Origin: Podarcis liolepis | Taxonomy: Eukaryota | Direction: 5' to 3' (one strand) | Length of the DNA stretch: 64,000 bases | Assembly (NCBI GenBank): GCA_965112155.1 | Contig: OZ218104.1 | Shown: positions 9,001 to 40,140 of the stretch, piece after piece | How the letters are laid out: every line of letters starts with the position of its first letter | How positions within the stretch are numbered: position 1 is the first letter of the stretch | Translations under genes and position numbers: made by a program | Notes under the pieces: generated by a model | What the model saw: only the letters and a program-made list of their open reading frames with translations | Told to the model about the DNA's origin: nothing | Database searches by the model: none

Positions 9001-12000
9001 GACAAGGAAGGGGACTGGAGACCCTGTGCATTCTACTCTAGAAAATTAAATCAATCAGAACAAAACTACACCATATTTGATAAGGAACTTTTAGCTGTGC
9101 ACGCTGCCTTTAAAGTGTGGAGACATTTTTTGGAAGGGGCATCACATCAGGTGGTGGTACAAACAGATCATAAGAATTTAGAGTATTGGAGAACTGCTAG
9201 ACAGCTAAACCAAAGGCAAATTAGGTGGGCAGAGTTTTTTGCTGGGTTTAATTTTAGGATTGAGTACATACCTGGGCATCAAAACATTCGTGCAGACGCG
9301 CTATCGCGCAAACCTGAGTATATGGAAGGGGAAGCACCTCCCAAGTTGCGAGAAATGCTGAGATCGGATCAGTGGGGGTGTGCAGCCGTAGTAGTGGACG
9401 GCAGGGAATTCCAGCAATTGACAGTAACAGATGAGTTTGCACAAAAGAAAATGGAGGAACTGAGAAAAGGTAAAGGGGAAGAGGAAGGTTTCAAAGAAAA
9501 AGATGGATTGTTGTACAGGAGAGGGGTGCTGTATGTACCTGCAGGTGAATTAAGAGGTAAAGTGTTGAGGCAACATCATGATAACCCGACTGCAGGACAT
9601 TTTGGTAGAGAAAAGACCCTGTATCAGATCACACGGCAGTTCTGGTGGCCAAAGTTGAGGGAGGAAGTAACACAATATGTAAGAGGTTGTGAAGTATGTC
9701 AACGAGCCAAGGCACCCAGAGCAGCTCCCGCAGGGTTGTTGCAACCTATGCCCACGCCGGGAAGGCCTTGGGATGTGGTGTCTATGGATTTTATAACGGA
9801 TCTACCGTCATCGCACAGGCAAACAGTGATCTTTGTAGTGGTTGACATGCTAACCAAGATGGCACATTTCATACCATGTACCAAAATTCCGACCGCACAG
9901 GAAACTGCAAAGATGTTTTTAGATAATATTTTTAGGTTGCATGGTATGCCATCACAAATCATTTCAGATAGAGGGGCCCAATTTACATCACAATTTTGGA
10001 AGAGGTTAATGCAGTTACTAGATGTGGAGCTAAGCCTCACGTCAGCGAGACACCCGCAAACCAATGGGGAAGCTGAAAGAACGAATGCAACACTACAACA
10101 ATATCTGAGGTGTTATGCTGGTTATCAGCAGAGCGGGTGGTTAGAGAAGTTGAGTCTAGCAGAGTTTGCGTATAATAATGCAATGCATGTGTCTACGGGC
10201 AGAGCCCCATTTGTGGCAAACTATGGCTTGCACCCAAGGGCATTCCCAGGTCAAGAGGAGCAGTTAGCAGTACCAGCAGCAGAACAAATGATAGAGGAGT
10301 TGAGGTGCATGCATGAGATATTGAAAGAGGATTTGGAAGAAGCTAAAGAGGCTTACAAAAAAGCTGCAGATAGGCACCGGCGAGTTGGGGAAGAAATCCA
10401 AGTAGGGAGCTGGGTATGGCTGTCTACCAAGGGACTACCAATACGAGGGAAGTGTAAAAAGCTAGAACCAAGGAGATTGGGACCTTTCCAAGTAAAGGCT
10501 CAAATTAACCCAGTCGCTTTCAAGCTTCATTTGCCTGAAAATATGAGAATACACCCTGTATTTCATAGATCTTTATTGTCAGTGTTTGTACCAGCACATA
10601 AGTATCAAATCTCAAGGGAACCACCTCCTTTCCCCACCATGATGGGGGAAGAAGAGACCGAAGTGGAAAAGATATTAGACTCGAGAATAAGTAGGAGGAA
10701 ATTACAGTATTTGGTTGCATGGAAAGGGTTAGATGAGTCTGAGAACTCATGGGAACCAGCAGAAAAAATTAACGTTCCGGAATTGCAGCGAGAATTTCAT
10801 AGAAAATATCCCCACAAGCCAAAACCCCAGAACTGGCATCTTCAAGAAATTTTTGAAGAGACAGATAGCGAGGAAGAGGAGTTCATAGGGTTCGGTCCTC
10901 CAGAAACAGAGGAGAGCGAGGAGGAGGAAGGGGGGCTTAGGGGAGGGGGTGATGTCAGGGAAGAGTTAGAGGTTTTCAGTTTATCAGAGGGAGAAAGCAT
11001 TCCCCAAGGGGGGGAGGAGAGCAGTGAATCTAATAGAAGGGAGCAAGAGGAACAACAGGGAGGGACCGGTTGTTCACAGGACAGGCAAGGGTTAAGTTCT
11101 AGCTCAGATTCTGAGGAGAGGAGATACAGGCCAGCTCTAGCCAGGAGGTTAGAAAAAAGAGCGGGAAAGCGAAGGGAAAGGCGCCTTCGCCATTTTGAGA
11201 GTGGCTGGTCATGGAGAAGCAGAGCTCAGAAGGTATCTGAAAGAAGTGACTCTGAGGAACAATAGTTAAGAACTGTTTGTAAGAATGTTTTGTTAATACG
11301 CAATAAAAAGTTTTATAAAAGAACCAGAAGCGTTTGTGTGGTGATCTGAAGAGGACAACGACCAGTCCTGACACCTTTGACTGAATTATGCTAAGAACAC
11401 CTGTGTGAAAAAGCAATATGCAGACATCAAAAAATAAAAGTCAGAATGGCAGGCTTTGTCCCAGAATCTGCTTGGAATGACGAATCTCAGACCCAGTGAA
11501 GAAAGTTCCTTTGACTATACACAGAGAGGGCCTTTCTCTTCCACCCATCTGGGAGTTGGGTCTTCCTTCCAGGTCAGAGAGTATGATGCAGCTTCCAGCT
11601 CCTCCCCATTCAGAAATTATGTGCAGCAGGAAAGGTCCCACCCTGCTCCTGGCCCTTGACCCTCTCCACCAAATACGTCCCTTATCCCACTTCACCAGGT
11701 ACCAGTTCTGGTCAGGGCTGGTGGACAAATTGACGCAGGAGCACCTGTGGCTGTCGGTGGTGACCTGCTCGCCCTGGAGCCCCTTCACCCGTGTCCAGAG
11801 GCTCTCCTGCTGCCTGGCCCTCCTCTGCTGCACCTTCCTCATCAACATCATGTTCTGGAGAAAAGAGGCAGGGTCCAGAAGCCCTGAGGCTGGTGAGTCG
11901 GCTGCCAGCTGGAGACTAGCATAGCCAGTGCCTTTCCTTGTCCCCTGCCCCAACATGATGCAGGTGGGCGCTGGGCTGGGGGCAGGTGAGTGGGTGGGGT

Positions 12001-15000: not shown

Positions 15001-18000
15001 CCTGCCCTCCAGCCAATGGTGCGGCCAAAGGAACGAGCCTTGAAAGACAAGAAGTTGTACTCCTTGATCAGAGAGATTGCAGGTGAGACCAGGCACGAAG
15101 GCCAGTAAGGGCGTGGATGGGTTGTGCAACACTTCCTGCTCCCTCCCCACACCAAGCAGGGGTGAAATATGCTCAGCATTCACACTCCTAAGCATCAGTG
15201 GTTAAGGAAGCAAGCCAGACAGAGAATGATACCAAGGTCAGAATGGTGGGAGCGGCAGTCGCCTCTAGGAACACAGGAAGAAACTGCCACATACCATGTC
15301 AGAACATTGGGCTTACCTTACATTTTCATCAAAAAATTGCTTTGCACAAGTAACTACCATAGAGTTAGCAAAATTTTCAAACGTAGGGGGTCCATGGCTT
15401 GGCTTTTGAAAAATAGGGGGTCCTCAGTACAGTGTTCCCTCAGGTTACAGATGCTTCAGGTTACAGACGCTTCAGGTTACAGAATCCACTAACCCATAAT
15501 TAGTACCTTAGGTTAAGAACTTTCATTCAGGATGAGAACAGAAATCACGCAGCGGCAGTGGGAGGCTCCATTAGCTAAAGTGGTACCTCAGGTTAAGAAC
15601 AGTTTCAGGCTAAGAACGGACCTCTGGAACGAATTAAGTTCTTAACCCGAGGTACCACTGTAATTAGCTAATTGGGAACCACTGCTATAAACCATACATA
15701 ACTCAGTGGATGCAGAATCTGCTCAGGACAAATCTTCAGATGTAATTTGCAAAATTTAAACCACCAGCAGGGAACATCATACCCAAGGGCGTAGAAAGGG
15801 GTGTGTGTGCGGGGGTGGGGTGGGGGTGCGGTCTGCCCCGTGTCACTCCTGAGGGGGTGACAAAATGGCACACTGCGGGAGGGTGGGAGACCTGGGAGAA
15901 GAGGCGGCGGAAGAGGACTGGAAGAAGTTTAAAGACTATTTACAAAAACATTATAAGCTGTATGAGTGTTAGGAGAATGCATGACAGAAAATAATACGGC
16001 ATCAGTAATTTAGCCATAAGAGATATGAGTAAGCGAGGTTTAAGAAAATGACGATATTCGAGGTAATATTATGCTTAAGTTAATTGGCCAAATATATGAT
16101 AAAAACATTGATAATCGGGGACATAATATTCGAGAACTATTAATATGATTTGAAATAAGGTAATAAATTGCTGTTTATAACTGTATGACTGAGAACGCAG
16201 GAAAAGGTGATGTGAGGAAGTCCAAAGTTTATGGAAATATGATTTATGGATAAATTGATTTTTAAGTATTTTTTTCTCTTTCTTTTTACTTTTTAAATCT
16301 TTTCTGTTCTTTTTTTGCTGGACTGTATGGTGATGGTACTATATATGCTTGTTAATCTTTCTTCTGTTTAAAATGCGCAATAAATATTTTATAAAAAAAA
16401 AGAAAGGGGTGTGTGTGCGGGGGTGGGGTGGGGGTGCGGTCTGTCCCATGTCATTCCTGAGGGGGTGACAAAATGGCACACTGCGGGAGGGTGGCACTTA
16501 CCGTGGGGCCTGGCCTGCAGCGCGCCCAAGCCATGCGTCTCTCCTGGGAGTGATGCAGTGGCTCAGGGCCCTGAGCTGCCCAAAACAGACTCCATGGGCA
16601 GATCACCACGCCACCCCCCAGGCGGATCACCATGGCGCCCCCATGGGCGGTGCCCCCCACTCCCGCTGCTCCGGGTGCCAGAGCAGCTAGCTACACCCAA
16701 TCATACCTGCAAGTGGGTGGGTTGCTTAGACCTGGAAGGGGTTATAATTTGGCCTGTGAGGTTGTTCCCCCTACGTCGTCTGGCTGTAGGGATGCAAAAT
16801 CCAACAGGACAAACTGTTTCGATCCACTTCCCTTTTCTGACACCCAGTGCAGCTTGTGTTCCTGGCTGTGCTGATGGTTCTCAGCTATACTGAGAGAAGC
16901 CCCAATGAGTTCTACTTTAACAACGCCCTCCAGAGGACCTTCACATCCCACCTGGAAGACATCCTTACCCCAGAGGAGTTGTACGGGTGGATCAGGGTGA
17001 TTTTGCTGCCTGGCCTCCATGGCAATTCTGAAGGTGAGCAGCACAGGGAACAGAGATAAAAGAGACATCCTTCTGTATACAGGCAGCCCTCTGCTTATGG
17101 GCATTCTACTTGTGTGTGACTGCTTTTATGCGGGTCACCACAAAATGAATGACTGAATAAATTGAAACAGTGTACCTTCCCTTGCTCAGGGCCGCTGCCT
17201 GGAAGTCTCTTTTTGCTGCTCACTCACTGTAATGGGAGGGATTGTGGGGAAGGCTCAAGGCAGAAGCCTCAAGAGAGGGAAGGTGTGCCGGGCAGTGGCC
17301 CCGGCGGCACACACTGTATAAATTATAAAAACATGGCCTCTTTAGGCTTTTTCAGTGTTGCCAAAGCTGAAACCTGAAATTTGCCCAGCTTTTCACATCT
17401 GTACAAACAGGTGTGCGTCTGTGTGTTTTGCTTCTAAGCAGCACATTTCTCCCCTCTCTCAATCTTCCAGGTTTGGCCATGGATGGAAACTCTTTCCTTG
17501 TGGGCAGCGTGCGGCTACGGCAGATCCGAGCCACAGGAGCCCCACCAAAGCCAGGGCCAGCTTTTCTCCCACTCCAAGAGGGAAAGCAGGGTCCCACGGC
17601 CAGCTGGGGGCCTCCTGCTGCAGGTGGGAGAGGTCAGGCGAGTGCCTGGGTCTTCCAGAATGAGAGCACCCTGCAAGAGTACCCCATCTGGGGGAAGTTT
17701 GCTCTCTATCCGGGAAGCGGCTACCTGGCAAACCTTGGCAGAAACAAAAGCTACGCCTGGAGGTATGTGGACTGAGGGAGCTGCAGAACAGGCATCAGGT
17801 ACTGAAAGCTCCAGGGGCTCTTTCTGGGCAGGTGTATCTCAGTCTCTGCCCACTATCTCCTGATCTGGTGAAGCTGTGGGAGAGGGTAGGCGAAAGCTAA
17901 AGACCCACAGTCCTGGCTAACAGTAGTGAATATGGCATTGCTAGCTGAAGTCTGGCAGGTGGTACTTGGGGGAGAACTGATCAACTGGGCAGGGCATGCA

Positions 18001-20466
18001 ATAGTAAACTAGAGTTGTGTTTCTCTTCCCCTGCCGCCAGTAGATTTAGGTACAGCCCTTAGAATTCTCTCCCACTGCAAGGTGGATACACAATACAACT
18101 TTTTTCTGCACCATTCCCACCAGAACCCTTCGCTATCTGGAACGGAACAACTGGTTGGACAAAAGCACACGAGTCGTCTTCATTGAGTTTGTTGTCTACA
18201 ATGCAAATGTCAACCTCTTCTGCGCAGTCACGCTGGTCTTGGAGGCCAATGGGATAGGCAAGAGCGTGTAGTAGAGACAAAGGGGGCCTAGCCCTGCAAT
18301 GGGCCTCAGAGGCAGGATGGCTGTCCTGGGACTGTTGGGGAGGGAGAAGGAGAATAGGCGTTCCCTCTCCCTGGGAGCCAGCCTTGCTTGCAGCCTCCAT
18401 GCTTGACCCTGTGCCTGTTTCTGTGGCAGGGGCCTTGTTCAGCAAATCGGAGCTGCAAATTCTGCGCCTCTATCCAGACCTCCAGCTCGTCCTCCAATTT
18501 ATCTGTGCCCAGATCACCTTTCTCCTGCTCATACTATATTACATCTTTGTGCAGGTGAGCAGGGCCTCTGTGAGGCAGCTTAGTTTCCTTAGCCTAGCAC
18601 CCTCTGGATATTGCTGGACTACAACTTCCATCAGCTTTAGACAGCACTCTCAAGGTGCCTAGGGTTAGTGGGAGGTATCAGCCAGTACCAGCTCAGGGGA
18701 GCTGAGATGTAGAACCTGTGGTGGGCCCTCTGGGTGCTGCTAGGCTCCCATCATTCCTGACCATTGCCATTGGCTGCCTAGAGCAGTTGGGCATTTGGAT
18801 TCCAGCAACACCTGGAGTGCCGCAGGAGTGTCATCCCACCCTTGTTTTAGGGCAGTGTCAACCTTGGGTCCCCAGATGTTGTTGGACTATAACTCCCATC
18901 ATCCCTGAGCTCTGGCCTTGCTAGCTAGGAATGATGGGAGTTGTAGGCCAAAAGCATCTGGGGACCCAAGTATGAGAAAGGCTGTTTTAGAGGGTGGTGG
19001 TTTGCGGAGGTTGCTGTATTGCCAGAGAAAGAGCATCACACCACCACTGCTCCTTCCACTTGCATTCCCCCCCCAAACATGTGGCTGCCTGAGTCAAACC
19101 TGCTTCTTCCATGGGGCCAGCAGGGCCGGCAGTTGAAGCAGCAGAAGTGGAAGTACTTCAGCAGCAAGAGAAACCTGCTGGATGCCAGCACCATCCTCAT
19201 AAGTGTGGCAGCTATTGGCCTTTATGTGAAGAGGCGCGTGCTGGCAGAAGGCATCCTGAAGCAGCATCGCCAAGACCGCAACAAGTGAGTGTCTACCATC
19301 CGAAACAAGGGGCAGGCCCCCACTCAGCAGAGGCGGCTTTCACACACCCTAAAGCAAATCTCCCTCTACACCCCTGCCAGGTTCATCAGCTTCTATGAGA
19401 TGGTGGAAGTTGACTCTGCTCTGACATACCTCATTGCTTTTCTGGTGGCCTTGACAACCATCAAGCTGTGGAACCTCCTGCGCCTAAATCCCAGAATGCA
19501 CCTCATCACACAGACACTGCAGAAAGCCTGGGATGAGGTCCTGGGCTTCCTGCTCACACTTCTGGTGCTACTTGTGGGTTACGCCATTGTGGTAAGAAGA
19601 GACCTGCCAACTGCAGGGAAACCAACCAAGGGCGGGGGGAAGAGCCCCCCTTCCTGTGTCCTTATACCCCTCCCCCTACATCACCTTCACTCTCTTGCCA
19701 TCAGTGCAACCTCATGTTTGGATGGAGCATAGATGACTACAAGACCTTCTTTAACTCAGCTGTGACCATCGTAGGGCTTCTCATTGGAATCTTTAATTAT
19801 GAAGAGGTGAGTGCCATGCAGCCCCACTTTAGGCTGAGGCACACTGCCAGGCTGCCCTTCCAGGACACCACAGATCGCAACAGACCCCCAGCCCCATTCC
19901 GCTCCCAGCTCAGCACCCAGAGAGACCTGCATGGATTTCAGCTTTCTGGGTCTAGAATGCCATGCTTCCCTGTGCCCTGCAAAGCACAGCACGGCCAACA
20001 GCTCTCTGCTATGTGCATATGTAGACACAGGGGACATAACTGTGCTCTTCATGCTTAGGTCATTGCTGTGGACCCTGTGTTTGGCGCTGTGCTGATTGTA
20101 ACCAGCGTCATCTCCATGGTGTTTGTGATCATCAACCTGTTTGTCTCTGCCCTCTTGACAACCTTCAGTCGTGAGATGAAGGCTGCCAAGGTAGGTGTAA
20201 GCCCAAGCGGCTGGTGCTGCTCATCGCCAGCCACCAGCCAAGCTTCAAGCAATTAAGCCTTCATGAGAAGCTGCTTGTGCCGCAGCCACCCCTCAGAATC
20301 AGAGTTCACATATAAGGCATCTCTCTCTCTCTCTCCTGGTTCATCACAACAGGCCAGCAAGGAGGAATCCATGTTGCAGCTGATTCAACTGAAGATTTCC
20401 ACCTTGTTTGGAATCAAGAAACAGCTGCGCATCCCAGCAGCTTCCCGAAAGGAGCCACAGGACTGA
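57..20466 (+). CDS. PKD1L3: Polycystin-1-like protein (PKD1L3 by synteny), 5'-incomplete multi-exon CDS: GAIN/GPS, TM1, PLAT, polycystin channel domain
   Basis: Phase-consistent exons read by eye: 57-202, 383-547, 805-938, 1724-1850, 1976-2101 (VASFAFNPF), 2319-2547, 3352-3536 (CYYW..W..DGC), 3712-3942 (GPS CLCNHL|TFF, TM1), 4261-4362, 4684-4862 (PLAT, IRLWHDN), 5673-5819, 11699-11892 (FTRVQRLSCC), 12306-12502, 12609-12777, 12975-13167, 14103-14355, 14698-14800, 14939-15082, 16848-17033, 17471-17762, 18124-18257, 18430-18554, 19124-19284, 19381-19591, 19705-19806, 20059-20190, 20353-20466 (TGA). Tail-to-tail with IST1, as human PKD1L3 is. The paralogue choice (L3 vs L2) rests on synteny. Confidence 0.85.
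1190..1397 (-). mobile_element. tRNA-derived/CORE-type SINE copy (squamate MIR-like)
   Basis: ACAACCCTGTGAGGTAGG...TGACTGGCCCAAAGTCACCCA...GGATTTGAACCCTGGTCTCC is the reverse complement of a B-box head plus CORE body. Boundaries are approximate. Confidence 0.6.
2833..2968. mobile_element. hAT-type MITE (palindromic)
   Basis: TIRs CAGGCTTCCTCAAACTC...GAGTTTGAGGAAGCCTG; near-perfect 8-bp TSD CTGTATGG (2825-2832) / CTATATGG (2969-2976). Confidence 0.85.
5932..6350 (+). repeat. 5' LTR (419 bp)
   Basis: Direct repeat of 10953-11373, identical except for a missing CA dinucleotide (GTTCAGG vs GTTCACAGG). AATAAA at 6279-6284. Confidence 0.97.
6351..6377 (+). promoter_or_regulatory. Primer-binding site of self-priming type
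   Basis: No TGG/tRNA 3'-end complement. ATACCTTCTG (6353-6362) is the exact reverse complement of LTR CAGAAGGTAT (6204-6213). Confidence 0.75.
6404..7450 (+). CDS. gag: Retrotransposon Gag (capsid-like domain + CCHC zinc knuckle)
   Basis: ATG at 6404 in good Kozak context (AAAATGG); PEG10/sushi-like capsid motifs (QEKVAYVINFLEGRA, LRMRQGKDTV, FREGLN, PEPMELG); knuckle CFVCGKPGHLARQC. Confidence 0.93.
   Translation: MEGAVAPVGQGETPALQLTLQDLWQQNLQLKSQVDVLSAALGEHRTMLQSTCGDRVSKTFTVRPRSFKGESSEYMAFKTEISYIIEIKDKEFQSEQEKVAYVINFLEGRAKDCVIPLISRRDVALGNLQIFLQYLDTIFLDPAHETTTARQLLRMRQGKDTVGVYWSNFSLLVQKLKWDLNSPTVAALFREGLNNEILDQLAQMPEPSSLDSLVRTCLQLSLRVERRASEKKEQWRPRWRENNIESTESRAGNVTGRERPEPMELGAARPLPVTTSSMVRGNAGKGRDARRCFVCGKPGHLARQCHNRKGWESLSGADMRHDNCPEELHQGNECPRLEMGACSRVEKQ
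7393..7460 (+). promoter_or_regulatory. -1 programmed ribosomal frameshift signal (G GGA AAC + H-type pseudoknot)
   Basis: Slippery heptamer 7393-7399 in the gag frame. Stem 1 pairs 7407-7414 with 7429-7436; stem 2 pairs 7419-7427 with 7452-7460. Confidence 0.88.
7393..11265 (+). CDS. pol: Retrotransposon Pol (PR-RT-RNaseH-IN-chromodomain), entered by -1 frameshift
   Basis: Uninterrupted ORF 7333-11265 in the -1 frame relative to gag. Motifs: LLDSGA (protease), YLDD (RT), ETDAS (RNase H), HHCC and DDE integrase, GPF, chromodomain VEKILDSR...QYLVAWKG...SWEP. Confidence 0.96.
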   Translation, partial: GKRMSPAGNGSLQPGGEAIEGSHAEPPIPGLTVKVQLQLPNGHSVQVEALLDSGASADFIDQKLVQEHKIALLPLSSPLRVKTIDGRPLLSGEVTYETPPMRMDMGHHSETRAFHVTKLAGHPMVLGMSWLNRHNPVIAWHQRSLVFGSIYCMTHCLGQKGKISVEVMGTEVEGKLMGNESEIPSQYMAYQDVFCEKEADKLPPHRPYDCKIDLVPGAQLPPSKIYAMSEVESAALREFLQKNLQRGFIRESTASGGAPVFFVKKKGEEGAPRLVCDFRILNSQMKPRVCPLPRIDDLLERVRSAKVFTKLDLRGAYNLIRVREGDEWKTSFCTKYGAFEFLVMPFGLQNGSGVFQTFINHVLAGILDQFCVSYLDDLLIYSESMEEHVKHVTQVLERLRTNRLYVKLEKCKFHTQKVEFLGYCISHKGVHMDPSKVQAVVEWEAPKTKKDLQRFLGFANFYRKFIGNYSKITAPLTDCLKGKGPFRWTEEAQKAFDKLKVVFASEKYLMHLDPSKRIKVETDASDRAIGAILLQQDKEGDWRPCAFYSRKLNQSEQNYTIFDKELLAVHAAFKVWRHFLEGASHQVVVQTDHKNLEYWRTARQLNQRQIRWAEFFAGFNFRIEYIPGHQNIRADALSRKPEYMEGEAPPKLREMLRSDQWGCAAVVVDGREFQQLTVTDEFAQKKMEELRKGKGEEEGFKEKDGLLYRRGVLYVPAGELRGKVLRQHHDNPTAGHFGREKTLYQITRQFWWPKLREEVTQYVRGCEVCQRAKAPRAAPAGLLQPMPTPGRPWDVVSMDFITDLPSSHRQTVIFVVVDMLTKMAHFIPCTKIPTAQETAKMFLDNIFRLHGMPSQIISDRGAQFTSQFWKRLMQLLDVELSLTSARHPQTNGEAERTNATLQQYLRCYAGYQQSGWLEKLSLAEFAYNNAMHVSTGRAPFVANYGLHPRAFPGQEEQLAVPAAEQMIEELRCMHEILKEDLEEAKEAYKKAADRHRRVGEEIQVGSWVWLSTKGLPIRGKCKKLEPRRLGPFQVKAQINPVAFKLHLPENMRIHPVFHRSLLSVFVPAHKYQISREPPPFPTMMGEEETEVEKILDSRISRRKLQYLVAWKGLDESENSWEPAEKINVPELQREFHRKYPHKPKPQNWHLQEIFEETDSEEEEFIGFGPPETEESEEEEGGLRGGGDVREELEVFSLSEGESIPQGGEESSESNRREQEEQQGGTGCSQDRQGLSSSSDSEERRYRPALARRLEKRAGKRRERRLRHFESGWSWRSRAQKVSERSDSEEQ
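10930..10952 (+). other. Polypurine tract (PPT)
   Basis: GGGGGGCTTAGGGGAGGGGGTGA immediately precedes the 3' LTR TG. Confidence 0.8.
10953..11373 (+). repeat. 3' LTR (421 bp)
   Basis: Direct repeat of 5932-6350; AATAAA at 11302-11307; followed by TSD CCTTT. Confidence 0.97.
15430..15660. mobile_element. Tc1/mariner (Tigger-like) MITE
   Basis: TA|CAGTGTTCCCTCAGGTTA ... TAACCCGAGGTACCACTG|TA: imperfect TIRs with TA target duplication. Confidence 0.75.
15887..16400 (+). mobile_element. 5'-truncated L1-like LINE (ORF2 C-terminal remnant, 3'UTR, poly-A)
   Basis: Begins with the peptide RDLGEEAAEEDWKKFKDYLQKHY, then an AT/T-rich UTR, AATAAA and an A-run. Flanked by a 94-bp direct repeat. Confidence 0.7.
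18853..18984. mobile_element. hAT-type MITE related to 2833-2968
   Basis: Same internal core (ACTCCCATCATCCCTG...TGATGGGAGTTGTAGGCCAAAA); CAG...CTG ends; TSD TTTTAGGG/TTTTAGAG. Confidence 0.75.
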
Positions 20467-22776
20467 AGTGGCATCATTCCACCTCCCCATTTGGACAGCT
20501 CTTTTCTATTCTAAAATGGGAAGGGTCACCATTTTCCAAGTATCACTAACGTACATGCTATCTTTAAGAATATCAGAGGTCAGCTGGGCTGGCAAGAAAA
20601 TCTATAGGGCTTTTCTCCCACTTTTAAGCTGCTCCTCCCGCTCTTCAGCTAATTTACCATGTGATCTTGACTCAACATTACCTCATGCTACATCCTACTT
20701 CCTTTATCCTTGACACGCCTTTGAGTTGTTGGGACTAACCAAGGCAGAACAAATCTGACTGCCCAGAAATCTCCTGCTGCAGCCCTGCAGGTTGAAGAGC
20801 AAAGCCGATCTTACTGGCTTCCAGCCCAAAGGCCGGTCAAGCCCCTAAACAGCAGGAGCCAGTTTCTTCTCTGCCCAAAGAGGCAGAGCAAAGGAGGGCT
20901 GTTCTTATTAGCCAATCCCAAATACTCAGTGGTGCACATCAATTAAGCCTTACAAATCAATTTATTTTTCATGTCGCTGAGGAACTCTTTACCTATTGCA
21001 GGGCTTAACCCCTGAGGAGACAAACAGGGAATTGTAGATTATACTCCTCTACCCAGCCACAGATTTGAAGAACTCATATGACAAAGGTGGGTCTGTTGAG
21101 ATGCACAAAGGATACACTGTTTCAAGGTGAACCAGAGGGAGGAGACAGAAGGGCGGGTGGGGAAGAAGAGTGACTATTGCCCCTCCCCACCCAGAGAGCT
21201 CAGTTTGCCCAATGAGAGAGATCAAATCCATGAAAGGAATCCAATCCTGCCTTTCCTTAAAGGCAGCCAACCTCCAAGATGCAAGAATCCTTAAGCAGCC
21301 CTTACCTTAATCCAGAGGGGACCCTTCAGCCTGGCCCAAGCAGAAAGCACTCATCCCCCTGCTCCAACCTGTAAAGGTCAGCATAAATCCTACAAGGGCT
21401 AATTTCTCAAGAATGATAGCTTGACAGTTCTATCACATCACTGCAGAGAAGGACAGCTGCTTCAGCACCCAGGCACTTCCCCGTGCCCTGCAGGACAGGT
21501 GGCCCGCTCTTCTGAAGCTGCCCCTGCTGCCACCAACCACAATGTCTTGTGGGAAGCAAGTCTAAAGGGAGCCTCATAAATTCGCCTGTGGGCGGTGGTT
21601 GTGGGCTGCACTGCAGATCCTCAGGTGTGCGATCCAAACTGATAGGACTTGTTCCAAAATATAACTGCGAAGCCAAAGTAAAGGCAACACATTTGCATGC
21701 TCCTTTTTGCCAATATTTCCCCTTCCCTCAATAAACAGTACTTCTTGTTTGACTGGAAGTGTGACTGTCAGTCTGAAGGAACGGCCATGATAAGAACTGG
21801 TGGCAGCTGCCCCTCCATGTTGTAAACATAACATGCCTCCTTTGCTTCCCCTCCACCACTGCCAGAAGCCAGGAAATATTATGTTTCACTTGAGACAGAT
21901 CCAGTCAAGGCTATTCCTCAACTTTATTTAGAATAGAGAAGATACAAACCAATCAAATTGTCCCAGAAAAGCCACAAGAAAGAGTTACATACAGAGTGTT
22001 ACATGGGAGAGCTGAGGTTGGCTGCTGGCACTGCAGCTGGTCTGTAAGAGCAGCAGAAGTTGCTGGATGTGTTGCTGCTGCTGTCACCACCACCACCCAT
22101 GGCTTTGCCCTATAGGCAAGGGAAGAGGCTAGAGAACCAGGAGTGATGGCACATGTCAAGCAATGGCCCTGAACCCAGCCTGATGCAGAGCCACGTTAAG
22201 GCAGAACTGGGCTCACTCAAAGCTAGGAAAATGTGCCTGCTGCTCTGCAAGCCAGAGGCAGGAGGATCACTGAGCCACAAGGAGTGTAGACTGGTCAACT
22301 CCTGTGCCCCACAGCATCCCTCCCCAAAGGAAAGTCATAATGGCCCCGGAGGGCTCCCTGAGAACGCGGCAGGCAAAACAAAGCTATCAGGGGCCCAGAG
22401 CAGCTCCCCTTCCACAGCACATGCCTGGAGGGGGGGGGGCGCTTCTGTCCAACTACGTTGCCCAGAATCTTCAGGTTGGTGTCCCTACACCACTGTCTGT
22501 CCAAATGAGAGGCCACCTACATCACTCCCTTTCCCCTCTAATGCCCGGCTGCAGACTGCAGAGCAATGCATTCGGAGGGATTGTTCCTGCTCCCATCTCA
22601 AAGAGGCTGTGCAGTCCCCCACTCCTGGAGCAGAATGTCAGAAAAGCAGTGGCATTTGGTGTAAGTACAGAAGGGAGAAAGGCCAAGCGGAGGAAGAGGA
22701 ACGAGCACTTGGCCGTGCTAAGAGGGAAGGAGGAGGCAGCAATCAGGCCCATCGGCCCCCTGTTCAGGGGCTCTTT

Positions 22777-25700
22777 TTAAGTTTTCTTCTTCAGTTCCTC
22801 AAACCTTCGAGAGAGGTCATCGAAGTCAATGTCTTCTGAGGCGGAAGTGTTGGCACCAGCAGAAGCGGCAGGCAGCGTGTCTGGCACAGATGGCAACTCT
22901 GGCAGCACAAAATTATCGCCCGAAGTAGGAACTGCAGCTGGTGGCCTCCCCCTCGGCTGTGGCTTTGGGGCTGGTCCTGCAGCAGACAAGAGTGACTGGT
23001 TACAAGCAGTGGGCAGGCTCAAGGCAGCGAAAACAGTAGTCTACCTAACAGTAGTAGGGGCAGGGGTAGGACCATTCTTCTTTTTGCTGTACTACAGTTA
23101 GTATATGTCCTGAAGAAGTGAGCACTTGCTGCACTTCAGTTGAGCCTTGCAGCTCCTGCCAGTTGCTAAAGGGGCCCAAGCTCTCTGCCATGAAGAGTCC
23201 CAGTCTCTGCCCCAACACAGACACACATGGGCACATGCTTAGCAACTCAAGAGCAAACACAAGAGTGAAGGGGACCAACAATAAACACAAGCACCAGCTT
23301 TCCCCTGACATCAGCACCTCCCTCCCTCCTCACTGCCTTGCCAGCTCCACAGCCTCCCCCTCCAGCTCTGCACTCACCGGTCACCTGTGGGGATGGCAAT
23401 TCCTTGTCAGCACCCATGTCATCAATCTGAAACAGAAAAAAACTGGCTTTGCATGGAGCACCCCACACAGAACCACCACCTGACAACTCCCTAGAGGCCT
23501 ACATGCACAGCAGAAGCACCATATCTGGTGTTCCCATCTTCTTCATGCAGCCTGACCAGACAGCAGAAGGAAGGAGGAAATGAGGAATCTGGAGGAGGAA
23601 GCAGTGGTGGTGAGCCTGGCCTGGTGGTGCCATAGGTGAGGGAGAGCTGCTCAGCATGGCTGACTTCCTGACTAGCAAGCGGCCCTGACTATGTCCCCCA
23701 AGGACGGCCTGACGGTGCAGTAGCTCTTCACCATCGCTGGCGGTCTCACCTTCAACCTGACATGAAGCACCACCACCAGCAACCACAGAAGTTTGGAGAG
23801 CAGTAGCTGAACAAGCGAAAGGCCTGAAGGTGGACACATCCCCATTTCCACACTCCCTAGCTGCTCAGCCCACCCCCACATCTCATCCTCTACCCCTGCT
23901 GGCCAATGTCCTCCGCTCATGCTTTCCATGGGCAGCAGCCTGGTCTCTGAGACCAAGGTGACCTCTGAGTCACTGCCTGCAAGCTCATCCAGGCTGCTGA
24001 GATCATGCTGAAGCTCCCTTGGTATCTTTATCACAGCCCCTCCCTCCTGCCTGGTAGACTCAAGTAGCTGCCCTGCTCGATCCCCTCAGCGGCTGCCTCC
24101 TCCACCACCACAATGTCAACCAAGGTGCGGCTGAAGAAGCTGGAGCAGTTCCTGGTGGACAGGCTACAGGGCCACTGCTGGACCTCCTGGTCGTCCTCTA
24201 AACCAAGTGCAGTTGCCACTCGCTGCTCCAGAGGGACAGGCTTGTCTTGGACTTCCTCAAGTGGGAATGGGACTCCTGATTATTGAAAGTGACCTGGGCA
24301 AGTTTCTCCTCAACAATGCCTAGGCAGTCAACATCCACCTTACCACTGGCGGTAGGCCTAAGAGCCCCATCATCTCCACCATGGCCCACTACTCGAGGAC
24401 CCCAGCCAGTGCAACATCTGGCATTATGTGCATTTATGTGTATTATAATGAACTGAACAGAGTGAAAGATTATGAGTCATGGGGGTACAGAGACTGTGTG
24501 AATGAACTTAGTGCTTAGCTTATATTTTTAATTGCTATTTTGTTAATGTTTTTAATATTGTTTTATAGATTCTAAATGCCGAATTGATTTGTTAATCGCA
24601 TGACTTGCTGTAATTGTGAGGTTTAGCTTATTTTTAGTTGCTGTTTTGTTAAGTTTTTTTATAGACTGCCACTGTTTTATTGATGTTTTATTGATAATTT
24701 GTTAATTATTTTATATGATGTATTTGTGACATGCTAGTATGTTTTATTATGTTATGGCTATTTATTGTTTGTAAGCTGCTTTGAGATGAAAAGCAACATA
24801 GAATGAATGAATGAAAAGCAACATAGAAATGCAATAAATCAAAATCATATCAAACGTGCATGAAGTTTGCTGCAAGCCCAAATCCAGTGGATGGCAACTC
24901 CTCAGTCAGTCCAAGTGGGAAGGCCTGCCAATACCCAGCACTAGACTAGGGACAGCAACAGTCCCAGCAGAGAGGACTTGCCCTCCCAGCAATTCAGCTT
25001 TTGTTTTTCATCAGCAGTACTTACAGACTCGTATGTTGGAGGTGTTGCTGGAATCTGAGGTGGGTGAAGGCTGGTGAAAGGCTGGTAGGTGCCCACCGGT
25101 AGCCCGTTGAAGTGCTCCTAAAGGGAGAAATTGTTAAGTCAGACCAGCACCCCTTCCTAATGGCAGAATCAGATAGGCAATACCTGCCAGAACAGCTGGA
25201 AAACCTTGTTCACACAGCAGGTAGTGAGGTGTGCTCAGATGCTAACTCACCACAGTAGACTGCTATCCTTTCCTCCCCCCCCCCACTACCACCCCCAATC
25301 CCAACTTTACAGACTCCCCTCCTGTTACAAGCAAGACATAGGACTTACTGGTCCCTTTGGAGGTGGGTATGCAAAAGGGGGAGCTGGAGACGGCATGGGC
25401 ATGGGCATTGGCATTGGCACAACTCCATCAGGACCAGCCATTGGGGTCATGAAGCCGCCGCCACCGCCACCACCTCCACGGCCACCTTTCTTTGTATCAT
25501 CCACGAATCCCACATCAATCAGGTCAGCTTCCACGCCTGCGGGAGCCTCAGCCTGGGAAGAGGAAGAAGCTGATGTCACATGTGGGAAAGGGAGCTGCTA
25601 CTGAGGGAATTGAGAGTGGAACCGCCTCCCAGTCACTCACCATGACAACAGAGTCTGGCTCATAGGGCACGTTGTAGTTCTTTGCGATCTCAATCAGGTA

Positions 25701-27587
25701 CCTCTCCACTAGGATTTTGGGAGGTGCCTCTACGCTCAACTTGTGCATCAGCTGGAAGGGAGGGAGGGAAGAGTGAGCCCTTCACTGAGCTGGGCAGGTC
25801 AAGAACACTTACCTAGCTAAGAGATATCCAAGCCAGAAAAAAGATAAATTTCTACCACAGGCAGGACCACCTGCTGCAAACAACTCATCTTTATGAAGCA
25901 CTGATATTGTTCCCTCCCATAAGAACAGCCTGCTGGATCCGCCTGTCTAGCCCAGCATCCTGTCCTCACAGTGGCCAAACAGATGCCCCAACAAGAAGCC
26001 CCTGAGTGGAGCAGCAGCAGCGCTCTCCTTCACCTGCGATTCCCAGCAACTGACTTCAGGAGCAGATCACTTCTGACAGCAGAGGAAGACGTAGCCATTG
26101 TGGTTAGTAGCTCCTGAGAGCCTTACCGCTATCTCACCCCCATGATGCCCTTCCCATTCCACTCACCCTGTCATTGACGGTCCCAATCTGGTTGCTCCGG
26201 CACAACTTGCCATACTCTTTGCTGTACTTGGCACAGAGCTGGTCAGCAACCTAGTATGGAAATGGCACACTCAAAACAGAGTCCAGGCACCACTGACTCC
26301 CCTCTATTTAAGACAGGGCACAGCAACTATCGCAGCACCCCTGGACAAAAGGTTCAGGAGTTTGGAGACTGGAGCCAACCTAAACTCCCAGATCAAACAA
26401 GAAAGTCACCAAGTTCTCTGAGCATCCTGTGAGGATAGATCAAAGTCTTTTCCCAACTGCTGCCCCCAGGTGTCCAGGAAGGCTGAGCAGCCTGCCAAGA
26501 CACAACTGGCACTACTCACCATTTTCAGCTCAGCCACCTCCGCTTGCAGTCGGGGGGCAGCCCAGATGAGGGTGGAGACAGCTTCTGCCAGGCCGGAGTC
26601 CAGCTCCCTGAAGGGACACAAAGTAAGGCAAGAGTGAACAAGTAGTTGAAAGACAAGGAGGACAAATAGGTCCCAGACCTAGCAGACTGAGGGGAGGGGA
26701 CATGTGGCAGGCACCCAGCACCCTCTTCCCCATAGGCCAAGACCTTACTTCATAGATTGTATGAGGCCAAAGCGTGCCAGAAGCAAGTCACAGTAGAGCT
26801 CCAGGATCTCCATGGCCTCCACCAAGTAGTCCTCCCGGATGATGTGCTCCACACGGATGCGAGCCCGCTCATCTTTGCCAGCAGACAGGTAGTCAGCAAT
26901 TTCCTTCCGTGCCTTCTGGGCTAGCTCAGCTGCAAGAAAAGGGTTCATCATGGGGCAGCAGGGGAGGCCCACAAGCCTGCCCTGGCCCCGCCTGGGGTGT
27001 TTGTGTATGCAAAGAGAGGGGCTCCACCAAGAAGGACTGTGGGTTGTCTCCAACTAAGTTACCGTATCTTTCGCCCTATAGGACGCACTTTTCCCGTATA
27101 CTCAGAATAGACATGTTGAAATTAAGTAACCATGTCCATTCAATGAGTATAGTGGGGCTAGAAGATAGTTAAAAAGACTCTTCTTAAAAACCTAAAAACT
27201 CCCTTTAAAAAATCAAGTCTTCAAAAAAGTTATATGATCTAAGAAAGTCTTTTAAAGAACCCTTCCAAAAGAATTTAAAAATTATAATGTAGCACCCTAG
27301 AGACCAACTGAGTAGTATAAGCTTCCGTGTGCATGCACACTTCTTCAGATACACTGAAACAACATGTGCAGGCTATAAATTAAGCATCTCTTAATTTATA
27401 GCCTGCACATGGTGTTGTGGGACACCACGACTACCAGAAACCTCCTGAATCACTGCTCTGGTGATGAGGTCAAGGAATTAGGTAGGAAAGTCCACTCACT
27501 TTTCTTTTTCTCCAACAGTTTGAGGCGATTGATGACAAGACGTAGGTTGACTCGCAAGCGCTCGGCCTTGAATCCAGAGCCTAACAT
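22777..27587 (-). CDS. IST1: IST1, ESCRT-III-associated factor
   Basis: Coding exons (minus strand): 27500-27587 (MLGSGFKAERLRVNLRL), 26749-26929, 26520-26607, 26167-26250, 25641-25751, 25349-25552 (PMPMPMP), 25025-25117, 23378-23426, 22777-22976 (MIM: DIDFDDLSRRFEELKKKT*). Non-coding exon 1 donor near 29304; AATAAA (minus) at 21923-21928. Confidence 0.96.
23656..23755 (+). pseudogene. Decayed captured fragment of the IMPDH1/IMPDH2-like start-codon exon
   Basis: With two frameshifts it reads MADFLTS-SGPDYVP-KDGLTVQ*LFTIAGGLTFN, against IMPDH1 [33 protein letters not shown]. It stops at TTC AA, the phase-2 exon end I recall for IMPDH genes. Confidence 0.82.
23896..24022 (+). pseudogene. Decayed captured fragment of cyclin L (CCNL2/CCNL1-like) exon 1
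   Basis: Reads LLANVLR-MLSMGSSLVSETK-DL*VTACKLIQAAEIMLKLP, against CCNL2 [44 protein letters not shown]. The stop (TGA) is a CGA CpG-decay product. It ends at the LP(Q) exon-1 boundary. Confidence 0.8.
24113..24265 (+). pseudogene. Decayed captured fragment of CDC42BPB (MRCK-beta)-like exon 1
   Basis: Reads MSTKVRLKKLEQFLVD...LLDLLVVL*TKCSCHSLLQRDRLVLDFLKW+G, against MSAKVRLKKLEQLLLD...[29 protein letters not shown]. It ends at TGG G, the phase-1 exon-1 end. Confidence 0.88.
24500..24840 (+). mobile_element. L2/CR1-type LINE 3' tail terminating the chimeric insert
   Basis: T-rich UTR, then TTGTAAGCTGCTTTGAGATGAAAAGCAAC stem-loop (24775-24782 with 24790-24797), (GAAT)n, and a tandem re-copy of ATGAAAAGCAACATAGAA (24786-24803, 24811-24828). 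Confidence 0.6.
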
Positions 27588-27914
27588 GGTGTAGAATTCC
27601 TGCCAAGAATACAAGAGAGAAAAAGCCTACTGTCATGTGTGTTAAAGGCAGACAGCTAGCAGTTTCCTGTGTAGATATATTCTACTTGTAATATTTATAT
27701 ATTGCTTTGCACATTCAGAGCCATTCCAGAGTTATTTAGAATAAAATACAAAATACATTTAAAATTCAAAAAAGTGATACAAATATAAAACACCAAAAGT
27801 GCTCAAAAATTAATCTAAACACAATATTCCCTGCTCTACACAAGCAGGACACCAGTATTCTCAAAAATCTCAATCATCAGCGCTGTCCAAATGCTGAGAA
27901 TAACTTTTTTGCAT

Positions 27915-28115
27915 GGTTCTAGATTCAGGTAGGTAGCTGTGTTGGTCTAACACAGTCAAAATAAAATAAAATAAATGTCCAGGAGCACCTTAGAGACCAG
28001 CTAAGTTTGTTCTGGGTATAAGGTTTCGTAGGTATCTGAAGAAGTGTGCATGTGCACGAAAGCTTATACCCAGAACAAACTTAGGTAGCCTCTAAGGTGC
28101 TACTGGACATTTTTT
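27915..28115. mobile_element. Penelope-like element terminal fragment in inverted (hairpin) arrangement; a related piece lies at 27290-27365
   Basis: ATGTCCAGGAGCACCTTAGAGACCAGCTAAGTTTGTTCTGGGTATAAG ... CTTATACCCAGAACAAACTTAGGTAGCCTCTAAGGTGCTACTGGACAT is an inverted repeat of about 55 bp. The family assignment is from memory. Confidence 0.6.
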
Positions 28116-28474
28116 AAATTAATCAATTTATTTTTTGCATGGTGCTGGAGCATTTCACAATTGGAGCGGGGGGGGGGGATCTGTTCTCTTGTTGCTACCT
28201 GCTGAACATCTTTTGGAGAGGCAGACAGTGAATTGTCTCAGATCTCAGGATCTGGATTGGTTTGAATGTGGAAAGGTTGCGAGCTGTAATGTTTTATCTC
28301 CGCTGCAAATATATAATAAAGCAAACAAGCAAATATAAGTAATTTTAATGCGCATTTTCGTATACAGCAAAAATAAATGTTTGAATAGACTATAAATGCC
28401 AGCCATTTTTAAACAGAGCCCATACACTCAAGTGTGTGTAATAGTACAGTATGCCAAAACCTATTTAAGAAATG

Positions 28475-30546: not shown

Positions 30547-33500
30547 ATGTCCCGTCGGAAACAGACCACCCCCAATAAAGTCCACTGTGAGTAATAAGGG
30601 GAGGGGGGCTGTTGTCACTTCCACCTTCACCCCCTTCCCCCGCTCAAGCGAGGCATCCTCATCCACAAAATGATGGGGGGGACAGCCCTCCCCTCCACTA
30701 TTTGCTGCATTCTTCTCCCATAGCCCTGGTGGGGACTCCCTGCCCAGCATCGAGGATTTGTTGGCTGAGCTGAGACATGTCCACGTAACACCTCTTGGAG
30801 CCTAAGGGCTCCTTAGGTACTCTGGGGGCTCAGAACCCCTCTCCGCCATTCTAGTGGCATTCTGTCTCTCATTGGGCCACCTTACCCACTGATGTTTCTT
30901 CTGCAAATGAACAGCTTTTCAGCACTAGTTGGGAATGGCTGGCTAGTCTCCCTTGCACAATGAGGAACAGGGGACTTCCAGGCACCATGATAGCTTTAGG
31001 ATCAGAATGGAAATAGCAAAGGCCCAGGAAAGAGTCTGGCAATTTCAGGCAAGCAATGCCCACTTTGCACAACTTAAGAGAAAACATATCAAGGAGGAAC
31101 TAAAGCAGATAACTAAACCTGGACTACAAAATCCACAGAAGAAGTCTCCCACCACAAATTTGGCTTGCAAAAGTAGATAAGTAGGTTTGCTATTGCCTAT
31201 AGTAAAGCATCTTTTACACACATGTAACAGCTTTGCCCCTGGAGGAGAACCTGTATGGCAGGACAAGCTCTTCCAAAATATGGGCCCTGGGGGTGGGAGA
31301 GCACATGCAAATTCTAGGGCGGAGCCAGGGCAGGCAAGAGCCCTCCCTGTGTGCTTAATGCTGCTGAAGACATTTGTATTTCCAGGTCATGTTGGAAAGG
31401 ATGCGAAGGGACGGATTGGTCAGGCCACCGTTGCTTTGCAGGAAGGGTTTGGGGAAAGCTGTTTTGGGGAATGGAGCCCAGGCATTAGTCCCATTCTGGG
31501 CCATCTTCAGGTAGGGGAGACCATCACTGGGCATCTGAGGAGGGGGCAAGGAATGACTGGGCTTGGGAAGGGCAATGGGCTAATGCGGCTTCTTCCTCCC
31601 CCATTGTACTTCCAGGGGAGCAAGTCTTTGCTGGGTTAGAAGAGCACACACGTCAGGCCATGATGCGAAGAGACTTCCCTGGGCTGCTTGGAGCCCAGTC
31701 ACCACTCATGCAGCAGCTGCCACCTCCACCACAAGAAAAGGACTCCAACAGCAGCAGTAGCAGCAGCAGCAACAGTGAGTTTCCCCATCTTGTACACAAG
31801 GGCAGCTCTGGGACACCTGGGAGAGACCAAACACCTGCATGCTGCTTTGGAATCCTGTCAGCTGGTCTGTGGCAGAGGCCTAAAGCTGTTCTGTATTCCA
31901 GGTGATAGCGAGGGGGATGAGACAACACAAGATGAGGTCTCCTCCCATGCTTCTGAGGAGGACGGAGCATCAGCGACAGTGAAAAAGGAACTGGAACTTA
32001 CTGAGCAGCTGGGCTGCAGCAAGCAGGTCGCTCGAGGCCATGAGGCAAGTGCATCACATTGGCCGTAGGCAACACATACTAAAGCAAAAGTGCAACACTG
32101 CTGTGGTTACTCGGTGGAAGGGAGAATAGCAATAGCAGACTCTTGAATGGCTCTAGCATGGAGAAAGAGGACTGTATAGCCCACTCTGGGATTCCTGGGC
32201 CTGGTCCATTGATGTGTCCAAGTGATCACTACAGCAGGCTCAAGTGATTGGGTCTGGACTTTTTGGCATTAGAGTTCCCTAATAGTAATGGGGGCAAGGG
32301 GAGTGATAGAGCTGTTGTCATCTCATTCTGGGCTTCCCAGAAGAGGCATTTGGTTGGCTGCTCTTTGTTAGAAAGACAATACACAACTAGGTAGACCCTC
32401 AATCTGATTGCGCAGGGCTAATCTTACATTGTAGAGAATCCGTCAACATGGTCTTAAAGGGTCTGGTGCAGCATTAGTTGGGGGGGGGAGGGGTATGTGT
32501 ATGCATGTGGCAGAATACCAGGTATGGGTCTTGTCCTCTGCTCTTTCCTTAGCCTGCTTTTCCTTGCTTGCAGATGGGTTTAAATGCCAGCCCAGATACC
32601 CTGATGGGACTCTCCCGTTGTCCCCTCTGCCAGCTAGAGTGTGGAAGCAGGGAGCAGCTTGTCACTCACGTCTATCAGGTACTTAGAGGGGGCTTTGATG
32701 AGACCATCACGCAAGGCTAAACCATCCCTGCCCTGGCTCCCCCTTTCCTTCCAGGCTGAAATTAGTAATCCTGGACTGGGAAAGGGTGGGGATGGGGGCA
32801 GGGGCTGTTGGCATTGGATGCAATTTGAATCATCCCCCCTGGTGGGTTTGCACCACATCCCAGGGAAGGCCTTGCGGGTCTCTCTCCTTCTTTCCCTAAC
32901 AGAAGAGGGAGCTCTTCCGTGGCTTGGCCTTGGCTGCCAGCCCTCATAGGGACAGCTGAGAGGGGGACAGGGCGGCGGAGCCCTTGCCTCACAGCCCGGC
33001 CTCGTTTGCAGCATACGGCAGCTGTGGTCAGTGCCAAGAGCTACCTGTGTCCCGTCTGTGGCCGAGCACTCAGCTCCCCGGGCTCCTTGGGCAGGCACCT
33101 CCTCATCCACTCCGAGGACCAACTGTCCAACTGTGCGGTGTGTGGGGCTCGCTTCACCAGCCATGCTACTTTCAACAGGTGAGAAGTGGGCATCTCTGAC
33201 GGTGGGACTGGGACAACGTGGCCCAGGCCGCATTTTGGAAGTCCTGGAGGGGCCCTGTTCAATGGAAGCAATGGAGGTTATACCTGGCAATTTCTGGAGG
33301 CAGCTGGAATAGGTGACCCCAGCCAGAAGCATTCTGCAGGCCAGCATTCATGTGGGTGGGGTGGCTTGTAAGCATGGCCAGAGGGAGGGGGAGGGTTACA
33401 GCTAAGGCAGTAGCTTGCAAGCCTACACAATGGCTTCTTAAGATCTGTGCCGACCACCCGTCATTTCTACTCTTTGACTTTCACAGTGAGAAGGTGTCAG

Positions 33501-34156
33501 AGGTGCTGTGTGGAGATGCCCTGCCCATTCCCCTCCCTGAGGCTTCTTCTGGTGCTGAGGAAAAAGCAGATGGTGGTGGTGCTGCTGCTGTCAGCCCCAC
33601 AGTGTATCCTGCTGGCATCCTCCTGGTGTGCAACAGCTGCGTGGCCTACCGCAAGCTTCTGGAAGCTCAAGCTCCAGGGGTTCGCAAGTGGGCCTTGCGA
33701 AGGCAGAACGAGCCCCTGGAGGTGCGGCTGCAGCGCCTGGAGCGAGAGCGCACAGCTAAGAAGAGCCGTCGAGACAACGAGACGCCGGAGGAGCGGGAGG
33801 TGAGGCGCATGAGGGATCGAGAGGCCAAGCGGCTGCAGCGCATGCAGGAGACGGACGAGCAGCGTGCGCGCCGCCTGCAGCGGGACCGTGAAGCGATGCG
33901 CCTCAAGCGGGCCAACGAGACCCCTGAGAAGCGGCAGGCTCGGCTCATCCGGGAGCGTGAAGCCAAGAGGCTAAAGCGGCGGCTGGAGAAAATGGACATG
34001 ATGCTGCGGGCACAGTTTGGCCAGGACCCCTCGGCCATGGCTGCATTGGCAGCCGAGATGAACTTCTTCCCACTGCCAGTGGGTGGGCTAGAGCTTGAGG
34101 GGCAGCTGCTTGGTAAAATGGCCTTTGAGGAGCCGAGTCCCAGTGCCTTGCACTGA
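30547..34156 (+). CDS. ZNF821: Zinc finger protein 821 (C2H2 fingers + STPR repeats)
   Basis: Exons 30547-30586 (MSRRKQTTPNKVH), 31616-31774, 31902-32044 (GC donor; alternative end 32026), 32574-32678, 33012-33178 (CPVC...HLLIH), 33487-34156 (ETPEEREVRRMRDREAKRLQRMQE repeats). AATAAA at 34294-34299. Confidence 0.95.
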
Positions 34157-39955: not shown

Positions 39956-40140
39956 GGCGCTCGCTTCGGGAAGCTGCAAGGTGGGCTGCTGCTGTCGCCT
40001 CCTCCTCCTCAAGGGGGTCTCCGGGCGGGATCACCTGCAAAGACACAGAGAAGAGCACAGGGGTCAGCCGGGTGGGGGGGGCAGGCGGGCGGCTTCCGCC
40101 CGGCGGGGGGAAGGGAGCCCCGGACACTCCTGTCGCTCAC

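Follow-up and report, generated by a model that had tools for sequence, protein, structure and literature searches.

The capture of a host first exon by splicing is documented for two SVA retroposons, human SVA_F1, which acquired its exon from MAST2, and chimpanzee pt_SVA_D6, which acquired its exon from STK40 (PMC6139936). In pt_SVA_D6, the whole family has the STK40 first exon, and exons from 8 other genes are found in addition in many of its members (PMC6139936). Stringent long interspersed nuclear elements (LINEs) mobilize RNAs that bear their 3' tail stem-loop; such a tail is characterized by a fixed 3' end, a stem-loop and a short repeat at its terminus, and it is a tail which the cognate ORF2 protein recognizes and which partner short interspersed nuclear elements (SINEs) share (PMC4176376). 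The insert described here lies on the + strand within an IST1 intron of the lizard Podarcis liolepis, in a stretch of 64,000 nucleotides of contig OZ218104.1 (assembly GCA_965112155.1), referred to below as the window. Its core belongs to a real, old, non-autonomous family of composite retroposons, in which gene-derived 5' modules sit on a LINE-type tail, and the IST1-intron copy is the most elaborate member of that family. An initial annotation had read the insert as a serial exon-trapping element built from the first exons of IMPDH, cyclin L and CDC42BPB; what it observed largely holds, and its interpretation is partly supported.

Like human SVA_F1, the lizard element is a non-autonomous composite retroposon without long terminal repeats (LTRs), has tens of copies and shows variable 5' ends. 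However, SVA is moved by L1 via a poly(A) tail and with target duplications, whereas the tail of the lizard element is of LINE type, is AT-rich and bears a predicted hairpin followed by (GAAT)n, and the element has no poly(A) and no detectable duplication. SVA_F1 is, moreover, an active hominid family with documented splicing, whereas the reptile element is old and decayed and its splicing is what we infer. With pt_SVA_D6, in which capture is iterated, it shares the nested arrangement of a family-wide first exon and exons of other genes placed in front in some members. There, the extra exons occur in separate members, whereas a single lizard copy stacks three or four modules, and both the partner LINE and the host lineage differ. 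The initial annotation gave the single capture of MAST2 exon 1 as the precedent and knew of no iterated multi-gene version in reptiles; this needs amending, as pt_SVA_D6 already iterates exon capture (PMC6139936). The principle, including iteration, is known from the ape SVAs; what is new here is the reptile host and the different kind of LINE partner. To our knowledge, the only other non-autonomous retroposon known to gain a new GC-rich 5' end through exon trapping is the hominid SVA driven by L1.

Two further groups invite comparison. Elements that share the tail of a stringent-type LINE (L2/CR1; PMC4176376), SINEs among them, resemble the lizard element in having a LINE-type 3' tail with short terminal repeats, a sharp 3' end and 5' truncated copies; the stem-loop of such tails has a counterpart in the lizard family consensus. 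The lizard element differs from them in its body, which consists of mRNA first exons, and its assignment to an L2 partner is putative. It also has no tRNA, 5S or 7SL head, since Rfam yields only a chance small nucleolar RNA match on 22000-26500. Pack-type transposons and Helitrons likewise combine pieces of several unrelated host genes, among them often first exons and promoters; their termini are defined on either side and they take up genomic DNA with introns or promoters, whereas the lizard element has no such termini and is repeated only on its 3' side.

Three-frame translation of 23400-24460 gives the three decayed + strand peptides of the initial annotation at the same positions, with the same stops and frameshifts, and places ATGs at 23656 and 24113. 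The insert and its host intron are organized as follows (basis of each row in brackets):

23427-25024, - strand: IST1 intron of 1598 nt that holds the insert (RNA joint, translation of flanking exons, Pfam Ist1)
23530-23655, + strand: leader before the IMPDH-like ATG (single-copy depth in both DNA runs, CpG depletion)
23656-23755, + strand: IMPDH-like coding fragment of a first exon, interrupted by two frameshifts and a stop (translation; putative gene name)
23756-24022, + strand: cyclin-L-like first-exon fragment, clearest at 23896-24022, seemingly without a start of its own (translation; putative gene name)
24023-24095, + strand: linker of 73 nt, beginning TGGTATCTTTATCACAG (depth)
24096-24265, + strand: first-exon fragment attributed to CDC42BPB (MRCK beta), with its ATG at 24113 and the end of similarity at the Trp codon 24262-24264 (PDB matches, depth)
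24266-24445, + strand: module 4, a segment common to the whole family (depth, bridging contigs)
24446-24847, + strand: AT-rich LINE-type 3' tail (GC 0.28, depth, tandem repeats, self-matches)
24515-24557 and 24623-24663, + strand: internal duplication in the tail (self-match)
24775-24797, + strand: predicted hairpin in the tail
24801-24815, + strand: (GAAT)3.8 in the tail (tandem repeat)
24786-24844, + strand: terminal 25-nt duplication in the tail (tandem repeat)

None of the three coding pieces runs on into a second exon, all of them stopping within ~33-60 codons. All reading frames of the insert are broken, leaving it with no coding capacity of its own (translation, Pfam) and hence non-autonomous. 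The CpG decay proposed for the leaders extends to every segment, with observed/expected values of 0.10-0.36 across the insert and 0.27 for 23530-23755.

The evidence that these modules form a family comes from contigs of two DNA runs, one from the species of the window (X1, single-copy word depth ~67-83) and one from a sister species ~3.5% diverged (X9, baseline ~11), which were matched to 23000-25500 at a likeness of at least 80%. Expressed relative to the single-copy baseline, contig word depth, which is only a rough copy number, is distributed as follows:

23504-23839, IMPDH piece: 1x in X1, 1x in X9
23840-24091, cyclin-L piece and linker: ~3-4x in X1; ~2.5-3x from 23924 and 1x before it in X9
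24092-24175, 5' half of the CDC42BPB piece: 8x in X1, 5x in X9
24176-24259, 3' half of the CDC42BPB piece: 24x in X1, 21x in X9
24260-24427, module 4: 14-16x in X1, 16-18x in X9
24428-24847, tail: 68-168x in X1, 42-160x in X9
24848 onward, intron flank: 1x in X1, 1x in X9

The two species show the same pattern, a depth that rises stepwise from 5' to 3' and drops at a sharp 3' edge at 24847 (from ~65-93x to 1x). The junction between the CDC42BPB piece and module 4 (24265/24266) is bridged in other copies, by record 4 of X1 (24246-24408) and record 20 of X9 (24231-24420), and module 4, where at least 15 distinct contigs lie over position 24350, is tied straight to the tail in further copies by joints 24283 to 24547, 24387 to 24525 and 24408 to 24740. 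This bridging and these links show that the core is a retroposon family and not a chance mosaic, and the sharp 3' end at ~24847, the stepped depth and the shared junctions likewise bear out the view that the tail was not inserted independently. Two of the three joints between module 4 and the tail are present in both species at single-copy depth, so the copies that carry them are orthologous and old; the 13-20% pairwise differences among family copies also indicate an old family.

Towards the 5' end the evidence becomes thinner. Two additional contigs span 23856 within the cyclin-L piece, the linker 24023-24095 has a depth of ~2.5-3.7x, and at position 24027, just 3' of the cyclin-L piece, additional contigs stand beside the locus contig in both species, which indicates that the extra cyclin-L copies probably continue into the linker. 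About two extra copies thus probably run across the cyclin-L/linker junction and are element copies rather than cyclin-L genes. For the IMPDH piece, no second copy is found at this likeness in the two runs. The expectation of dispersed copies with shared junctions is therefore borne out for CDC42BPB/module 4 and module 4/tail and probably for cyclin-L/linker, but not for the IMPDH piece. One contig stands apart: it measures 623 nt, has a low depth (27), and matches 24096-24262 only, with unlike sequence on either side; it may be the parental exon 1 of CDC42BPB, GC-rich and set between a promoter and an intron.

The origin of the third coding piece is the best documented of the three. Two stretches, 24107-24169 and 24202-24276, have MRCK-beta/CDC42BPB chains as their sole PDB matches, to residues 1-16 (E 0.25) and 39-59 (E 0.32), respectively, among 177,635 sequences. 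Each E-value is weak by itself. However, two independent pieces match the same protein only, they are collinear, and residue 1 falls beside the ATG, so the resemblance is not one of chance and, on these protein matches, the piece 24096-24265 derives from CDC42BPB, as the initial annotation proposed. The similarity runs from residue 1 to Trp 58, and no downstream frame continues it. The LLDLLVVL piece has no PDB or Pfam match. The stop-free parts of the IMPDH-like and cyclin-L-like pieces are either below 20 amino acids or have no PDB or Pfam match, a literature search for IMPDH and cyclin-L peptides returned no match, and Pfam recognizes no family in any stop-free piece of the insert on either strand. 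A 72-amino-acid open frame, 24068-24283, was also used as a PDB query and rejected, giving chance matches only, because most of it is out of the CDC42BPB register; a homologous-protein search with the same frame, for open reading frames (ORFs) of paralogous copies or a parent exon, yielded no candidate.

The tail accounts for the great majority of the matching copies. Its region is AT-rich (GC 0.26-0.37), and many family members start to match at 24446 and diverge upstream, suggesting that the composite took just the last ~400 nt of a far more abundant element. The loose-end family consensus contains an 8-bp stem, GCCGCTTT...AAAGCGGC, with a longer loop in most members, followed by ATAGAAAT; the IST1-intron copy has lost part of this loop. 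The tail first described as T-rich with a stem-loop and (GAAT)n is thus confirmed in its AT-richness, its (GAAT)3.8 and its 25-nt duplication, but the stem-loop is not significant in the IST1-intron copy and is seen as an 8-bp stem only in the family consensus. The source of the tail is probably an abundant stringent-type LINE or SINE of the L2 clade.

Module 4 has no PDB or Pfam match in any frame. The stranded RNA of the sister species includes 22 + sense reads that align with 24327-24393 at ~85%, differ from it consistently at 24350, 24359, 24360, 24370 and 24372, and are flanked on either side by CpG-rich sequence. Their sense follows from the first mates, which lie on the minus strand, and from the IST1 reads, in which the first mate proves to be antisense to its RNA. 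The module-4-like RNA may be a parental exon or an unmethylated source copy, and either fits a once CpG-rich, transcribed origin. Beside module 4 and the CDC42BPB piece, the linker deserves a remark of its own, as its start, 24023-24039, looks as if a splice donor had been joined directly to a pyrimidine tract with an AG; the resemblance may stem from transcription that once read through into an intron, or it may be fortuitous.

The account that fits these observations best is a stepwise capture of first exons at the 5' end by splicing, which is plausible, unproven, and in our judgment has the somewhat better case. A copy of the element would have come to lie, in the sense direction, within intron 1 of a gene with a CpG island; in transcripts from the host promoter, splicing would have joined exon 1 of that gene to a cryptic acceptor close to the 5' end of the element; and the chimeric RNA would have been retroposed, its tail of ~400 nt allowing a LINE reverse transcriptase to copy the composite. 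Module 4 and then the CDC42BPB first exon would be once CpG-rich 5' modules placed before the tail, to which a few copies would have added the cyclin-L first-exon piece and the IST1-intron copy alone the IMPDH piece; each addition might have supplied a new promoter. The depth ranking CDC42BPB > cyclin L > IMPDH is the one predicted by the acquisition order first proposed (CDC42BPB, then cyclin L, then IMPDH), and we infer the order itself.

Several points weigh against this account. The IMPDH piece has a depth of only 1x, so that its movement together with the remainder of the insert is conjecture. The gradient of depth, itself built on a rough copy number, is also expected from plain 5' truncation of one multi-exon master. 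No splice acceptor is visible in the insert, as splicing would have removed it. The best candidate for a target-site duplication, 23752-23767 versus 24850-24865, is not above shuffles, 137 of 500 of which reach it. The pieces 23656-23755 and 23896-24022 show a good resemblance to the N-termini of IMPDH and cyclin L, but these two gene names are putative, and the ends of the first exons of IMPDH, cyclin L and CDC42BPB are presumed positions. The hairpin of the IST1-intron copy folds no better than shuffles (z = 0.22), the 64-kb window contains no LINE and the L2 partner is putative, and module 4 and the 73-nt linker are left unexplained by the exon-trapping model.

The same modules could have been joined, at once or in several rounds, by a reverse transcriptase that changed templates or jumped to further mRNAs during retroposition, as in chimeric retrocopies of the U6-L1 type, with the steps in depth produced by 5' truncation of one master. 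Such truncation gives a 3'-anchored gradient, and the fact that no acceptor site is demonstrable also suits this explanation. However, template switching should join sequences at arbitrary points, whereas here three joins fall within the first 33-60 codons, all involve the 5' ends of coding regions and none reaches exon 2; the cyclin-L module seems to be 5' truncated, unlike a switch at the 5' end of a template, and the insert has no poly(A). We consider template switching unlikely. The single-copy state of the IMPDH piece raises a different issue, namely that the insert may record nested or adjacent independent events, with a retroposon proper of ~23768-24849 or shorter and an IMPDH-like piece that was in the intron earlier or arrived separately. 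It is in keeping with this that the best match to the sequence after the tail (23752-23767 versus 24850-24865) sits exactly at the IMPDH/cyclin-L junction, but the shuffles reach that match in the proportion given above, a simple origin is hard to see for a first-exon fragment that stands alone and lacks a 3' end, and translation shows no obvious IMPDH continuation after 24866. Independent events are, on balance, slightly less probable again than switching. A processed pseudogene is rejected, as no piece enters exon 2 and poly(A) is absent.

The idea that a Pack-type DNA transposon (a hAT element or a Helitron) picked up the pieces as DNA finds a hint in the short, repeated AT-rich motifs of the tail, which are like subterminal repeats. 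Terminal inverted repeats, however, do not exceed chance (the best end-to-end pair is 10 nt), and a 13-nt inverted pair, 24429-24441 and 24821-24833, was rejected, its letters being absent from the family consensus. A Pack-type hAT element is repeated at both ends, whereas here repetition is confined to the 3' side, the 5' 300 nt being single copy (23504-23839 in both DNA runs), and an 8-bp target duplication of the hAT type was sought without any significant flanking direct repeat being found. The 3' end, with its microsatellite and hairpin, is LINE-tail-like, and no promoter or intron DNA is evident beside the coding pieces. The lack of terminal inverted repeats and the single-copy 5' part argue against a DNA transposon, an alternative raised at the outset that now appears improbable. 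Finally, the coding resemblance might be fortuitous, arising in GC-rich intron DNA beside an ordinary LINE or SINE fragment. The single PDB E-values (0.25 and 0.32) are weak, and two of the three gene names are putative; against this, two independent pieces have the same protein as their only match and are collinear with it from residue 1 beside the ATG, and the segment belongs to a repeated family, so that chance resemblance is very improbable indeed.

If stepwise exon capture is correct, the exon-trapping strategy evolved independently in a reptile family on a LINE-specific tail. Stringent LINEs are usually thought to be poor spreaders of host sequences; they would then be able to disperse the 5' ends of genes. 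Three or four first exons stacked in a single copy would constitute a readable history of source loci. The wider proposition is that a system like SVA_F1 arose separately in a reptile lineage around a stringent (L2-type) LINE, serially trapping CpG-island first exons (module 4, CDC42BPB, cyclin L, IMPDH) and keeping a layered record of the captures, and that first-exon trapping is a general route by which such elements gain promoters; it is tentative, and on present evidence it falls a little short of an even chance.

The position of the insert is well defined. IST1 lies on the minus strand, where stop-free stretches spell its exons in translation from a start at 27626 to a last exon ending at 22780, and Pfam Ist1 matches three upstream minus-strand exons. 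The exons that flank 23427-25024 translate to IST1-like sequence, and in the stranded RNA of the sister species an RNA joint from 23426 to 25025, with CT..AC ends on the + strand, is supported by 52 raw reads and one transcript contig. The joint and its ends define the IST1 intron as 23427-25024 and place the insert antisense to IST1, in agreement with the initial annotation. The insert occupies most of this intron, and, from contig matching, the orthologous site in the sister species carries the whole insert. No further copies of the insert were found within the window.

Elsewhere in the window, an ATXN1L-like ORF with AXH and ATXN-1_C domains is located at 37970-40012 on the - strand, and a weak STPR-repeat ORF lies at 33350-34156 on the + strand. 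The latter looks like ZNF821, and IST1 and ATXN1L are neighbours in other vertebrates as well. An LTR retrotransposon at 5932-11373 has two 100% identical LTRs of ~420 nt (5932-6350 and 10953-11373) and an open ORF of 1310 codons (7333-11265), and is a very young insertion. Short palindromic units at 2828-2973, 18858-18989 and 27965-28120 have arms of 49-65 nt that are 86-89% complementary, and two of the three are 80% alike; they look like a family of the miniature inverted-repeat transposable element (MITE) type. A G-rich direct repeat of 94 nt (15793-15886 and 16401-16494) is 97% identical between its two copies, which lie 608 nt apart.

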